Notes: generated by a model from the letters alone, not told the origin. Positions 39,357-49,815 are shown, numbered from the stretch's first letter. The stretch is DNA of 64,000 bases from Ministeria vibrans ATCC 50519 (GCA_943704425.1 CALSCP010000388.1:64131-128130); one strand, 5' to 3'. Numbers and translations are program-made.

Positions 39357-39626
39357 ATCCACACACTCTCTCTTCCACGCCATGGTCTATGCACCGATGT
39401 AACCGACAATACTTATAATGCACAGTTCATTTACTATTATTGATAATTTATCCAGACAAATTAAGATAACGTCATTGTTCTTTTATTATCCTTTATAATT
39501 ATTATTATGATGCATGGCGTACCATTGCGATTACCTCACTGAATAGCGATTGAACTCGTGCTTTTGATGTTGATCCTGGTGACTGTATTATTAATAAATT
39601 AAATGGGTTGTATTCTTCCTTTGTTA

Positions 39627-42600
39627 TTATGCACTCAGAGCACACTCAATGATCGCGCGGAGAATACGCTCATGGCCATCATGTTCGGAGGACATCGGCT
39701 TCCCGAGTGCGGCGCCTGCTGTGCACAGGGTGCGCTGGAAGGCAGCCACGAGGGTGTCGCGCAACAGCCACCGCACAAGCAACGCGTATGGTGAGCCTCC
39801 TTTACACGACTCGTCACCGGCGCCGCTCGACACACCACTATTTGCCTGTTCACCACCCAATGCCCGCTCCATTTCCTTGCGCTCCATGTCAAGCCAGTTG
39901 TCAAAAAGAGATGTGTCCTGCTCGCCCGTGTACGGCGAGAAGAAGTCACTGCGCTCAAAGGCAAAGTCAAAATCGACTGGTGCAATAAGCTGCCCGGCCT
40001 CCGTCGTCTGTTGCAGCACCACAAAATTGTTGGGGTGTGCATTGCAGTGGGGCTCGACGGGCGAATGATCAAAGAAAGTGCCCCAGTTGATGGACTCGCG
40101 CTGGAGCGCACCCAGCACAAGAGCCACCTCTGTCCCAAGACGACTCATGAGAGACACCAGTGCCACGGTGACGGAGAGTGCGTCGTGGCGTGCGGTGATG
40201 GTGGGAAACATGAGGGACACGGCGGGTGCCAGAGCACATCGCAATAGCAGCACAGAGTGGTGAAGATCAGGATTGTCGTCGCTCATGCTGCAGTGCGCGT
40301 CGACGGGTTGCGCACGGGAGTCGGCACGTCCCGTTGAGCAGGCACTCCACGTTGGTGCCATAGTGCCGTCCTCATTGACGACGCGCGTACTCTCCGTGCT
40401 GTCACAGTGCCGACGAATAGCACTGGCAAGAGCGTCCAACTGTGACTGCGAAGGAGGCACACGAGTGAGAAGGAGCCGTTCGAGTCCACCGAGCAGGTCG
40501 GCATCAAGTCGTCGCTCACCGACCGTCTCAAAGATCCCACAGCAGGGACGTGCGTCCCCCGCAAGACCTGCAAGCAACGAGGAAGAGTCCCCGTCAAAGT
40601 CATAGCGCCATTGACCTACAGAGCGGTTTCCAGCAATCATGTGCAGAGGCTTGAGCACGCGCGCGACACGCTCGGTCATGGCAAGCTCGCGTTCGACAGT
40701 CGACGGAAACTGAGAGCCACGCAACTCGGTGCCGTCGAGAAGTGCCTGGAACGGCATGCCAGGGAAAGAGAAGGTACACAGAGGAGGGGCAGCACAGCCA
40801 ACAAAGTTGCCGCAGCCCTTGAGGCGGAGGTATACGTCGGTGCCGTCGGATGTGGAGATGGGCATGACGGCAGAGCGATCGCCGGAGCGCCACGCCCAGC
40901 GAGCGCCCGCAGGAACCTTGAGCAGTGGCTCAGCGAGTAGGTGCGCGTAAGCAATGGGAAACCCTTGAGGTTCCGACGACGCAGACGGAGGGTGTGGAAG
41001 AAAGTCTGCTGAGGGCACACAAGGAAGGTAGAGGGAAGACCCTTTATGAGATAACGGCTGAAGGCGCGAGTGCGCTGCAATGCGTGCTGCCTTTGACACG
41101 CGCGCAAGAGACGCCACAAGCGAGGTACCATCCGACACGATGGGTGAAGCAGCGGTCTTTGGAGGCGGGGACTGGGCGTCGTTGATGTTGTGTGTGGGAA
41201 GCGAGAGGGAGGAGGGAGCGACGAGCGAGTCGGGCTGATGGGGCATAGCGACACCCGAGACGGGTGCAAGGAAGACGCGTTGGTGTGCGCCGCGACTGAA
41301 GAAGAGCGCGCTCTTTGACGACACTTGAACTGGCGAGTCCATCGGAGAACTGGCGCAGCTACAGAACATGCACGTTGGATTGGGGTCGACACAATAGGAG
41401 AAGCACTCGTGTGAGGCAAGGTCCATTTTGGTCCAGTGTGGCAGCGCAGGGGCAGAATTGTCATAGCCGTCGACAAAGAGCGACTGGAGCCAGACTGAGA
41501 TGGCTGCACCTGCGCCGGCGGTGCAGGAAAGGACGGTGGAGCCCACGGAGGCGGTGGGAACGGCAGAAGAGGCGTCGTGTGCAGGCATCAAGTGGGCAAT
41601 ACTGGAGTGCTCCAGGATGTGCTGGGGGGTGAGCGTACTCAGGGGAATGGTGGTAGAAGTGCGCGAATCGACGTTGTTGCAAGCAAAGCAAGGTTGGCGC
41701 GAAGGGCGAGGGAACACGTCGGAGACCCACGCGAGTGCCCAGGAAGAGGCAGAGAGATAGGAGAGATTTAGACGGGTACAGAGTGACGAGATGGCCAAGT
41801 CGTACGTGGCGCCCACATCGACGGCATTGAAGATGCAGGTGGCACGCTGGGCAAGACGCGTCACCAGGTCAAACTGGGTCACTACATTTGCATGGTACGC
41901 TTCGATGGTGGGTGTGGTGGCAACGCGATGGGTGTGTACGAGGGTTTCACGGGCGGCGTCTACTTTGCGCTGGCCAAGGTGGCGCTGGTGGAAGAGCACC
42001 TGTCGGTTGAGATTGGAGGCATCCACGGTGTCACAATCAACTAACATGAGGTGGCCAATGCCCAAGCGGCACAAGTGCAGTGCAGCGGCACACCCAATGC
42101 CGCCCACGCCAAGCAGTAGGACACTTTGGCCGGCGAGCGTGTCCTGGCGCCACTTGTCGACGGCCGATTGACGCGAGAACACTTCGGAGACGGACGCAGA
42201 TAGTGTTGGGCAATCGGAAGAGGAGGAGGAGGACAAAGGAGGGGAAACGGGCGGGTGGAAGAGGGGTCGCATTGCGTCGAGAACATCGAGCAGTTGCGGG
42301 AGAAGGTCAATATCGCTGTCGGAGGCGCGCACAAAGGCAGCGGTGCGCTCAATCCAATTGATCATGCGTACTTGGTCCGCCGGCGCAGTATGGTGGAGGG
42401 CGTCGAGATCGCGCAGAAGCACAAGGTCGCGCGAGCGGAGTGCAGCGGGTGGGTTGTACGACTCGAGCCATTGCAAGAGGCCGGGAAGGGAGAGGTCGCC
42501 GCAGTCGGTGTGTGCGACGGCATCGAAGGTAGTCAGTAGCGCATGCAGGTGATTGCCAAGGAACCAACGGCGCACCGAGGTAGTGCCACAGAGAGCCTGT

Positions 42601-43647
42601 CGAATGAGCAAGATACTTTTGCTGAAGACCTCGTGGTAGCGCAATGATCGGTGTGTAAGAGCGAGGTCACAGTCGTAAAGACAGTCGTCCTTGTCGGCAT
42701 TTTCGCCATTTGAGGGTGCATTTATTGCAGCTGCTGCACGATCTAATCGTTCTTGGCGACGTCTATTTTCATGATGGACGCCCACAGAGACGGCGAGCGT
42801 GTCGAGGCGCGCGGGAGAGGAAGAAGAGGCAACGGCAAGGATGGGCGCATTGAAACTGTCGAAGAGGAGAATCTCAATGGAGCCTGCCAGTGGCACATTG
42901 ACGAGAACGCTGACCCAGTGATCGACGACGCCCAGCAAGAATGCGCGCGTCGAGCGCCTCTCCGCTACGCCCAGGTCGATCATGACTTTCTCAACGTCCT
43001 TGACGTCTGCTGCGCTGTGCATTTCGACCAAGGCAGTCATCGGCACAAAGGAGACTGCCTGGATAGCCTGCTCAACATGACTTCGTTCAAAAATGCATTC
43101 CTCAAGCGTGGCGCACTCGCGTTCCGCCTCCGTCTCGTGTGGTGCGATGGTTGTTTTGAGCCGTCGACAAAACTCGCCAAAGCCGTCCGTTCCATCGCCA
43201 TTCTCCTCGCCACGCAATCGTGCCAGAGCCTGCGCATTTCCCATGGCTGCCTGGTAGCACAGGGTCGCATTGTAGATTGCATGGTAGCCGCAGTTTCTGT
43301 CCTGAGGCGGGCGCGGCCGGTGAGAAGACAAGATGGTCGAGCAGAGAGTGGAGGAGAGAGTTTACCTTCGAATTTTGAGCCCGCACTGCGATTTGCGCAG
43401 TCACCACGTTGTGTGCGTGATCATGTTCGACAAACACAGCGCGGTCGATAAGCTTGGGAAGGACATTTTCCGTCATTTCTTCAAAAATATTAAAATTAAT
43501 GGGTGTTCCGTACTTCCGTGTTCCAGATGGCTGGTGACTAAACATCACGAAACAGGCCAACGCGTCATTCAAAGATCAACAGGCAAGTGAGGCAACAGCG
43601 AAGTCACTCAAGTCAGCGATCAGTTAACACTCAAATGCTAGTGCCAT
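39627..43647 (-). CDS. Three-domain fusion: papain/Josephin-like Cys peptidase + ThiF/E1-like domain + SelO-like kinase-fold domain (start approximate; intron 43302-43365)
   Basis: AQNSK|DRNCGYHAIYNA, DHWVSV, LLFDS; then LLGVGGIG, VDCDTVDASNLNRQ, KV, NAVD, CFAC, CMFC; then SGDRSAV, LRLKGCGN, ELRG...ERE, HCNAHPNN, APVDFD. All lie in one open frame. Confidence 0.8.
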
Positions 43648-44170
43648 GCCACTGTGCCCTTGCCGAACAAGAAGAATTTGAAATAAATAACAGAACTGCA
43701 GACCCTTTTCGCCCGAAACGGCACAGTCTGCCTCTAGAGAGGTCTATACGCTTATTATAGACAATAATCTGGTCCCAATCGTTTACGACAGACCATTGGC
43801 TCAGCGGACGGGCTTTGCAATTGTATTTACTTTTCTTTTGCGAAACAGTTTCGCGCCCCACGCGCCTTGGTGCTGGTTAATCGTTCAAACGTTGGTGGTC
43901 CAAAGTGTAGTTGTACAACGTAGTACCCAGATCGGACAATTTGAAGGTCGTTCAAGTGTCCGATCCCCGGTTGCGCCGTTGCGGTTGCGTACGGATCTAA
44001 CTGGAACGGATTTTTTTGCGACAGGAATAAGGCGCGACCGAAGTCCAAACTCCAATCACCAATGAACTTGGTCCAAAACATTCTTATTCACCTTCCTGCT
44101 CGCGCCACCTTTATTTCCATTGCCTTTTGTGCCTTCACATCCCTACCCTCAGAGAGCCATCATTAACGCC

Positions 44171-44262: not shown

Positions 44263-44725
44263 GTAAGCACCGTTGCGCAGCGTCGATCCATGCATCGCCG
44301 GTTGCAGACCACTCAGGGTCGTTTGCGGCGGCCGCCCCTTTCTGTGAGCGTAATGCGTTATCGAGCGGGGGAGCCGTCGGAAGACGTCGTTGTGTCACCC
44401 GACACGCTCGAACCCGTCCGACAGCTTCCCTCCACCCTCCGGGGCTCCCTAGCACGACAGTTGTACCCATGTCGCACCGCCGCAGTCGCGTGCGATCGTT
44501 GGGCGCAAAAGCAGACCCATTTGGAATGAGTCAGTTCGATACGATTCTCTCCTGTGTGGCTCGTGCAAAAAACCTGTTCTTTGTTTCGCTCCCGCTTGTC
44601 TCAGTCACCGTATCATATGCTGTTTAATCACTTTTCCGTGCGCCGATTCGCAATCAGTGGCAATTTTCCTTATCTCGGTCCGTTGTCTCACTTTTTTTTT
44701 TTTTTATCGTTTTTTTTTTTCTCCC

Positions 44726-44735
44726 NNNNNNNNNN
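44726..44735. other. Assembly gap between the Zn2Cys6 intron and the RPC2 body
   Basis: 10 Ns followed by a T run. Confidence 0.98.
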
Positions 44736-44775
44736 TTTTTTTCGCTCTGTCTCTCTCTCTCTCTTTCTTCTCCAG

Positions 44776-49815
<5,040 letters not shown>

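Follow-up and report, generated by a model that had tools for sequence, protein, structure and literature searches.

The window analysed here, a stretch of 64,000 nucleotides (nt) from Ministeria vibrans ATCC 50519 (GCA_943704425.1, CALSCP010000388.1:64131-128130), carries on its minus strand, between positions 43545 and 39627, a single-copy, transcribed gene with a product of about 1,284 residues. As judged from sequence and predicted models, the protein consists of a central ThiF/MoeB-type adenylation domain, which is followed by an atypical protein-kinase-like domain and preceded by a module that is probably thiol peptidase-like. The three-part fusion was found only in this gene. The adenylation domain is of a known kind; its fusion partner and the N-terminal module are unclassified families. 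The preliminary description of this DNA knew of no characterised protein with such an architecture, and a full-text literature search bore this out: no paper was found on ThiF fused to a kinase-like or Josephin-like domain, and a single homologue has a name, its annotation going no further than a hypothetical THIF-type fold protein. We tentatively propose, at somewhat less than an even chance, that the three modules act on one substrate with a C-terminal carboxylate, which would be trimmed, then adenylated and then taken through a second nucleotide-dependent step. The substrate would probably be a ubiquitin-like protein (Ubl) or a peptide tail.

The open reading frame (ORF) extends over 39627..43331 on the minus strand, in a frame open from 43361 to 39630, and ends with a TAA stop at 39627-39629. 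One exon of 1224 codons without interruption (exon B, 43301..39630) carries all three modules. In its frame a stop stands just 5' of the putative catalytic Cys, and the sole in-frame ATG lies 3' of this Cys. Our first guess, an intronless gene of the trypanosomatid type, was ruled out by this frame closure and by a confirmed GT..AG intron of 64 nt (43302-43365, phase 0), the borders of which read AAG/GTAAAC ... CCTCAG/GAC on the gene strand. The intron was spliced out in contigs of the public runs X1 and X3, with the joint at 43300 to 43365 (cut +1), and was retained in genomic run X12, whose contig is collinear over 39523-43509. As they skip a genomic intron, the X1 and X3 contigs are considered to be RNA-derived. 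Each contains the whole gene in one piece (39630-43300 and 43365-43711 in X1; 39529-43300 and 43365-43452 in X3), with no further joint within the 3.7-kb exon. One exon holding three parts, and single transcript-like contigs spanning the gene, agree with the one polypeptide that had been supposed earlier.

Exon A is read in a different frame and contributes a coding sequence of 60 codons (43545..43366). The ATG at 43545, which an ATG scan identified as the first one open through to the end of exon A, is the likely start codon. The start assumed earlier, at 43647, had to be abandoned, as the ATG there meets a stop after 7 codons. This ATG and that at 43568 each open a 7-codon upstream ORF in the 5' leader, and these upstream ORFs may serve translation control. 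A second small intron (about 43630 to 43540) that would make ATG 43647 the start was ruled out by the collinearity of the X1 contig over 43365-43711. The Gln of the Q-x6-C signature is the last-but-five residue of exon A. The stretch across the junction, ..AQIAVRAQNSK/DRNCGYHAIYN, aligns with ..SQIRALKQNKNDSCGYYALFN and similar stretches of homologues, and two Gln across the splice junction are conserved in the homologues of the N-terminal module (P0019-P0023), which supports the gene model. Thus, of the three signatures that had been placed in one frame, the motifs were recovered at their positions on one exon, and the Gln was found to belong to exon A and its other frame.

All searches and fold predictions used exon B (43301..39630) or parts of it. 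Exon A, scanned alone as an 80-residue frame stretch (43333-43572, running on into the intron), gave no match. The kinase-fold and N-terminal modules are each single-copy in the genome; a whole-genome PF00899 search found this gene again together with the usual set of other ThiF-type loci.

Parts of the gene, with their support in brackets:
43546..43711, minus: 5' leader, at least to 43711 (X1 contig collinear over 43365-43711; ATG scan)
43366..43545, minus: coding part of exon A, 60 codons, ending ..VVTAQIAVRAQNSK and supplying the Gln of Q-x6-C (ATG scan; Gln conservation)
43302..43365, minus: intron, 64 nt, GT..AG, phase 0 (X1/X3 joint; present in X12)
39630..43301, minus: exon B, 1224 codons (ORF; X1/X3 collinear)
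42807..43301, minus: putative Cys-peptidase-like core, exon B residues 1-165 (invariant columns; model secondary structure; family leads; fold unconfirmed)
42222..42806, minus: helical region of the N-terminal module, residues 166-360 (common to stand-alone homologues; Trp278 and Pro285 invariant)
41352..42188, minus: ThiF/MoeB-type adenylation domain, residues 372-650 (PF00899; PDB relatives; invariant residues)
41022..41351, minus: low-complexity linker from the ThiF to the kinase-like domain (gaps in its pairwise alignment to P0001; little conserved, and of greater length than in the sponge proteins)
39630..41021, minus: predicted atypical protein-kinase-like domain, residues 761-1224 (17 homologues; AlphaFold model)
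39529..39626, minus: 3' untranslated region, at least to 39529 (X3 contig collinear from 39529)

Motif positions:
43278-43295, minus: NCGYHA (Cys codon 43290-43292)
42906-42923, minus: DHW (His-Trp 42915-42920)
42849-42866, minus: FDS (Asp-Ser 42855-42860)
42168-42179, minus: FSRQ
42093-42110, minus: GVGGIG
42000-42038, minus: DCDTVDASNLNRQ
41679-41690, minus: CFAC
41361-41372, minus: CMFC
40872-40886, minus: SGDRS
40809-40826, minus: RLKGCG
40677-40697, minus: RE
40026-40049, minus: HCNAHPNN
39957-39977, minus: DFD

The central domain is assigned by its sequence to the ThiF/MoeB type, with a predicted full set of residues for ATP-Mg binding and C-terminal carboxylate adenylation and with a Cys4 zinc site. 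It matched PF00899 with 111 bits against a cut-off of 28.1 (E 6.5e-32). The closest PDB relatives were SAE2 (5e-17), MoeB (8.5e-16), ThiF (7e-13) and Uba4 (2e-12), with matches restricted to the adenylation core (query 405-576); together with the invariant adenylation residues, these matches confirmed the ThiF core noticed earlier. In an alignment of seven ThiF fusion proteins (A3; the query and six others), residues F17, R19, Q20, G40/42/43/45, D64, D66, N72, N74, R75, Q76, K88 and D137 were invariant, the motifs being the Arg finger FxRQ, GxGGxG, DxDxV...NxNRQ, a Lys and an Asp, which we take to map onto the respective residues of MoeB. The Cys4 site C180/C183/C286/C289 (two CxxC pairs, CFAC and CMFC) was also invariant in A3. 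Further invariant Cys residues were C53, C150 and C235 (in VLxC); some small E1-like enzymes carry a reactive Cys in the region of C235.

MoeB, ThiF and Uba4 resemble this domain in the Rossmann GxGGxG, the Arg finger, DxD..NRQ, the Lys and Asp, the Cys4 zinc site and the short crossover region. It differs from them in being fused to a kinase-fold domain and a peptidase-like module, without rhodanese domain, catalytic-Cys domain or ubiquitin-fold domain (UFD). The canonical Ubl E1s (UBA1, SAE2, UBA3) are recognised by an inserted catalytic-Cys domain and a C-terminal UFD. Here, only about 45 residues lie between the last core strand and the second half of the domain in A3, with no inserted catalytic-Cys domain, and the positions 3' of the ThiF domain are taken up by the linker and the kinase-fold domain, with no UFD. 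Because both parts are missing, we regard the domain as a compact adenylating enzyme and not as a full E1. TcdA was matched over the Rossmann part only (E 8e-6, against 1e-16 for MoeB and SAE2). The Cys4 zinc site sets MoeB and ThiF apart from this tRNA enzyme, which lacks the motif (PMC4405576).

The C-terminal domain is, as its predicted structure suggests, most aptly described as atypical protein-kinase-like, and it represents a new, undescribed and widely scattered eukaryotic family. We found 17 homologues, with E-values down to 5e-66, and all motifs named for this domain in the preliminary description were invariant among them. The 40 invariant columns include SGxRS, RLKGCG (with the beta3 Lys), RG, E112 (the helix C Glu), HCNxHxNN, DFD and RD. 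Invariant K68, E112, N332 and D350 (domain numbering) correspond to the beta3 Lys, the helix C Glu, the catalytic-loop Asn and the metal-binding Asp. R49, R66, R101 and R171 were also nearly completely invariant across distant eukaryotes and one bacterium. The position of the HRD catalytic Asp (domain 327) was occupied by Asn in 18 of 18 family sequences. When the loop HCNAHPNN is set against HRDLKPEN, Asn stands where the catalytic Asp would be and His takes the place of Lys, with the Pro and the metal-binding Asn retained; DFD is found in place of DFG.

No Pfam model, including those of the kinase clan, matched the C-terminal domain in the query or in any of the 17 homologues. Profiles of the kinase-fold family and of the N-terminal module found no match among PDB sequences, a lone row at E 0.38 being spurious. 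The kinase-like fold that had been predicted was supported by the modelled structure. The AlphaFold model (AF2) of the domain, with a predicted template modelling score (pTM) of 0.75 and a mean predicted local distance difference test score (pLDDT) of 67.6, showed the kinase order of strands and helices and a long helical insert of low confidence at residues about 190-280. Structure comparison gave the highest Z scores for PRPK (13.1, about 203 of 230 residues), Bub1/BubR1 (12.6-12.7) and Bud32 (12.4-12.5), and lower ones for WaaP (11.5) and SelO/YdiU (10.9). Altogether 182 PDB representatives had Z of at least 8, and the best 50 of the 182 were nearly all kinases or kinase-like; many kinases reached Z 10-13 over about 200-245 residues, and differences in Z among kinases are small. 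Foldseek gave weak matches (E about 2e-3) to choline kinase, YdiU, mTOR and others, and small-molecule kinases (choline kinase, maltokinase, glucosamine kinase, APH) were among the Foldseek/VIA matches. As best structural neighbours, PRPK/Bud32 and Bub1/BubR1 superpose with Z 12.4-13.1 and a root-mean-square deviation of 3.4-4.5 over 190-245 residues. They differ in that identity is 11-14% with no relation at the sequence level, in that they keep the catalytic Asp, and in the helical insert present here.

The label 'SelO-like', which the domain had been given, was not supported in that form. The SelO model PF02696 did not hit the gene or any of the 18 kinase-fold family members, while three other loci of the genome scored 1e-17 to 1e-53. 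In hhalign, the family profile aligned with nine bacterial SelO proteins at a probability of 0.3%, and a hidden Markov model of the family found no match to the SelO exons of the genome or to the kinases in the window. Membership of SelO failed by Pfam, signature motifs and profile-profile comparison, and PRPK/Bud32 and Bub1, about 2 Z units above SelO/YdiU, are structurally closer. What the domain shares with SelO/YdiU is a kinase-like fold, the loss of the HRD Asp and a Lys-Gly-x-Gly after the beta3 Lys (Foldseek probability 0.99, Z 10.9). It differs in its catalytic loop, HCNAHPNN and not HGVLNTDN, in DFD and not DYG, and in lacking GHQFG..GDGRA. The three canonical SelO loci of the genome (contigs C313, C2753 and C2175), each multi-exon and unrelated to the gene, carry GHQFG..GDGRA, KGAGKTPFSR, HGVLNTDN and IDYG, of which only KGxG is common to the kinase-fold family. 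By analogy, a SelO-like way of working, that is nucleotide-dependent chemistry without a classical base, is possible. One study (PMC6858067) describes SelO and SidJ as examples that kinase folds without the classical base can be enzymes, and SidJ as a kinase-like fold that adenylates a carboxylate and then ligates, instead of phosphorylating. SidJ is a calmodulin-dependent Legionella effector, and it is used here as a mechanistic analogy only, with no claim of homology.

The N-terminal module, a member of an unclassified family, is probably thiol peptidase-like, with a Josephin-like active-site pattern and a putative papain-like fold. No homologue was found by a word-indexed search with the module. 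When 1.84 billion representatives were scanned in full with HMMER, five proteins were recovered (374-450 residues; E 1.5e-6 to 9.5e-4); they come from short transcript-like contigs and EukProt and stand alone, without ThiF. In the alignment of the module (A2), Cys4, Gly5, Ala8, Phe121, His128, Trp129, Asp148, Ser149, Asn151, Trp278 and Pro285 were invariant. In the model, Cys4 opens a helix, His128-Trp129 open a strand and Asp148-Ser149 end the next strand, a predicted layout that is as expected for a papain-like centre. The pLDDT of this model was 53, and its confidence may have been lowered by its starting at exon B, 60 residues into the protein. Language-model leads for residues 1-170 were Josephin (0.81 and 0.80), C58, the ShET2 N-terminal region and the herpes tegument protease; all of these are thiol peptidase families, and all leads (0.79-0.81) are under the level that counts as evidence.

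The Josephin model PF02099 gave no hit at E <= 10 for any of the six module members and, over the whole genome at E <= 1, found the genuine Josephin gene only. With hhalign, the motifs stood in register with Josephin without significance (E 0.06 and 0.45). The likeness comprises the order Gln, Cys, His, Asp/Asn, CxxHx[LI]xN after the Cys and an [ND]S..P stretch; the genome's own Josephin shares AF-x6-HW with identical spacing and Q..C..H.[LI].N. The module differs from Josephin in being about twice as long, with an extra helical half, in the missing Pfam match and in its unconfirmed fold. Weak matches to clan CE, namely of two homologues to C48 (E 0.04-0.07) and of the query to ElaD/SseL_C (E 0.054), fell on the same two motifs. 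Ulp1/SENP of clan CE (PF02902) was rejected, since its order is His, Asp, Gln, Cys and that found here is Gln, Cys, His, Asp, with no conserved Cys after the Asp.

Fusions of ThiF and kinase-fold domains, about 760 residues long, were found in the sponge Oopsacas minuta (P0001) and in its close relatives P0002, P0005, P0006 and P0007 (ENA assemblies), which align over 69% of the query with 30% identity. The closest relative, P0004 on the transcript-like contig L036, has both parts, and P0003 is a 5'-truncated fusion. Stand-alone kinase-fold proteins of about 480 residues were found in Rotaria, in a EukProt entry and in a protein under a GI number, and further homologues lie on gut-metagenome contigs full of eukaryotic genes. 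Since the pair recurs across distant eukaryotes, ThiF plus kinase-fold domain is the conserved functional unit. The sponge-type proteins begin at the ThiF domain and have no peptidase module. In L036 an in-frame stop stands 6 bases upstream of the ThiF start, and the module is probably absent from this closest relative. L036 also has a 35-nt GT..AG insert between the ThiF and kinase-fold frames (L036:810-850), identical in two runs, which is a very short intron or marks an unspliced copy.

The single member of the kinase-fold family found in the bacterial collection occurs in a metagenome-assembled genome of Cellvibrionales (L009:3136-5680). It has predicted membrane spans and the loop HANAHTNN, and its gene is broken by an N run. 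The very next gene encodes a UFSP/C78-like Cys peptidase of 225 residues, hydrophobic at its N-terminus, in which the Cys lies in SWSCTYNAF and is followed by YDPH; the UFSP/C78 Pfam match (E 1.4e-4) is below the cut-off. This neighbour was considered as a relative of the N-terminal module and is not related to it. Of the 401 genomes of this order that were searched, the other 400 lacked the family, which is therefore no regular constituent of bacteria. The gene pair of L009 could have been taken up from a eukaryote. Immediately upstream of P0005, on the same strand of its eukaryotic ENA contig, lies a gene whose product has a RING finger and a coiled coil and for which no Pfam entry is recorded (L038:8518-9810); as a RING-finger protein it was likewise rejected as a relative of the N-terminal module. 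The kinase-fold family thus either stands alone or is accompanied by an E1-like adenylating domain, a Ubl-type thiol peptidase or both, and from these settings the simplest common denominator is a ubiquitin-like protein or peptide C-terminus.

In the proposed order of events, the N-terminal module (Q..C..HW..DS) would act as a thiol peptidase that trims a precursor, or that removes or recycles a tag. The ThiF domain, as a MoeB-like dimer, would adenylate the exposed C-terminal carboxylate. The kinase-fold domain, which keeps nucleotide and metal ligands and has no general base, would then perform a second nucleotide-dependent step, with either this substrate or an acceptor as its target. Candidates for this step are AMPylation or acyl-adenylate-dependent ligation, as in SelO and SidJ, and the adenylate might in this way be resolved without an E2. 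Prokaryotic Ubl systems reportedly pair an E1-like enzyme with a JAB peptidase (E1-JAB operons and fusions), usually with an E2-like protein too. They resemble the present protein in their logic, a peptidase for C-terminal processing or deconjugation being linked with an E1-like domain that adenylates. They differ in that theirs is a JAB metallopeptidase in bacterial or archaeal operons, whereas here the peptidase is of the thiol type, no E2 was seen, and a kinase-fold domain is added, all in one eukaryotic polypeptide.

Several points weigh against this proposal. The analysis identified neither a substrate nor a Ubl partner, an E2 or an acceptor. The kinase-fold domain could be non-catalytic, because the catalytic Asp is missing in all members, and AMPylation is an analogy and not a homology, because there is no sequence-profile link to SelO. 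For the N-terminal module, no Pfam peptidase match was better than E 0.04, and no fold match was obtained with a model of pLDDT 53: fold searches with this poor model returned helical bundles from its C-terminal half, insignificant rows and a few clan CE enzymes at E 1.6-2.2. The module is not essential to the core function, as the sponge-type proteins, and probably the closest relative, do without it. The peptidase neighbour in bacteria is a single case and of another peptidase family, and the gene neighbourhoods in eukaryotes give little functional information. In the search for a free Ubl, the ubiquitin and NEDD8 genes of the genome were found to be split by introns. A single-exon ubiquitin-like domain ending ..KERGGRKK (L045; contig C1735:22971-23249) presumably corresponds to the C-terminal Ubl of splicing factor SF3A1 and is not a free modifier.

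In the alternative that survives best, the partner of ThiF is a true pseudokinase: the kinase-fold domain would be a scaffold, either nucleotide-binding or purely structural, and would recruit the substrate or regulate ThiF, adenylation (with proteolysis in this protein) being the sole chemistry. Such a role would fit the two exchanges fixed throughout the 18 members, HRD Asp to Asn and catalytic-loop Lys to His, and also the lack of similarity to any catalytically characterised kinase-clan Pfam family. The near-invariant Lys, Glu, Asn-Asn, DFD and four Arg are, however, more typical of an active site than of a scaffold, and the SelO and SidJ precedents (PMC6858067) show enzymes on kinase folds without the classical base. 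We consider a scaffold rather unlikely.

Another explanation makes the Cys-His-Asp module a thioester or acyl-transfer site, standing in for an E1 Cys or an E2 or being transglutaminase-like, in which the adenylate would pass to Cys4 and then to an amine, so that the protein would be a self-contained ligase. Papain-like Cys-His-Asp centres can perform acyl transfer, as in transglutaminases and acyltransferases of the NlpC/P60 type. The ThiF domain without an inserted catalytic-Cys domain, and the fusion of the module N-terminal to it in one chain, would suit such a relay. It is nevertheless distinctly improbable: the sponge-type proteins manage without the module, stand-alone homologues of the module occur without ThiF, and the invariant C235 of the ThiF domain (A3) could serve instead.

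The substrate might also be other than a Ubl, for example a small molecule, a ribosomal peptide or an RNA nucleoside, as for MccB, PaaA and TcdA, with the kinase-fold domain taking part in metabolite or tRNA modification. ThiF-like enzymes accept many carboxylates as substrates (PMC12596934, PMC12250964). A tRNA substrate is suggested by the resemblance to PRPK/Bud32, which belong to the t6A pathway and rank first among the structural neighbours (Z 13.1), and a small molecule by the small-molecule kinases among the Foldseek/VIA matches. The Cys4 zinc site, which is of MoeB/ThiF type and absent in TcdA, weakens the case for tRNA, as do the weaker, Rossmann-only match to TcdA, the catalytic Asp kept by Bud32 and the small differences in Z among kinases. 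The two peptidase associations point to protein or peptide substrates, and we regard a substrate of another kind as hardly probable.

A further-reaching version of our proposal sees ThiF plus kinase-fold domain as the core of an undescribed eukaryotic pathway of conjugation or C-terminal modification free of E2 and E3. The ThiF domain would make an acyl-adenylate, the Asp-less kinase-fold domain would perform a new nucleotide-dependent transfer or ligation, and the Cys-His-Asp module would add a self-contained writer/eraser or a thioester relay. This is conceivable at best. Finally, the idea that faulty assembly or gene modelling fused separate genes can be set aside for practical purposes: the uncertain first-exon model and the 30 unlike letters at the stop codon of the X1 contig are outweighed by the stop-free 1224-codon frame, the collinear genomic X12 contig, two transcript-like contigs that cross all three modules with the intron spliced out, and the conserved junction.

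Two irregularities were seen near the gene. The X1 contig departs from the genome right after the last sense codon (39630), where 30 unlike letters, with no match elsewhere in the window, replace the TAA stop; the X3 contig, which comes from the same study, stays collinear as far as 39529. The X1 end may be a chimeric contig, a 3' variant or the trace of an engineered or tagged strain. An assembly gap, a short N run at about 44700-44760 (XXXX in ORF 44554..44919), lies about 1 kb upstream of the gene.

E1-like domains and atypical kinase folds have been a repeated source of new protein chemistry, as in Ubl conjugation, sulfur relay, microcin C, AMPylation by SelO and glutamylation by SidJ. What the present analysis adds is a fusion of ThiF and kinase-fold domains conserved in a sponge and scattered protists, two families hitherto unclassified (one of kinase fold, its active-site Asp always replaced by Asn, and one with a Cys-His-Asp pattern), and one natural protein joining all three modules. 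The fusion points to likely partners of two orphan families and offers a compact, expressible target for finding the substrate. Should the kinase-fold domain prove catalytic, the Ubl-type pathways of eukaryotes would gain a new reaction.

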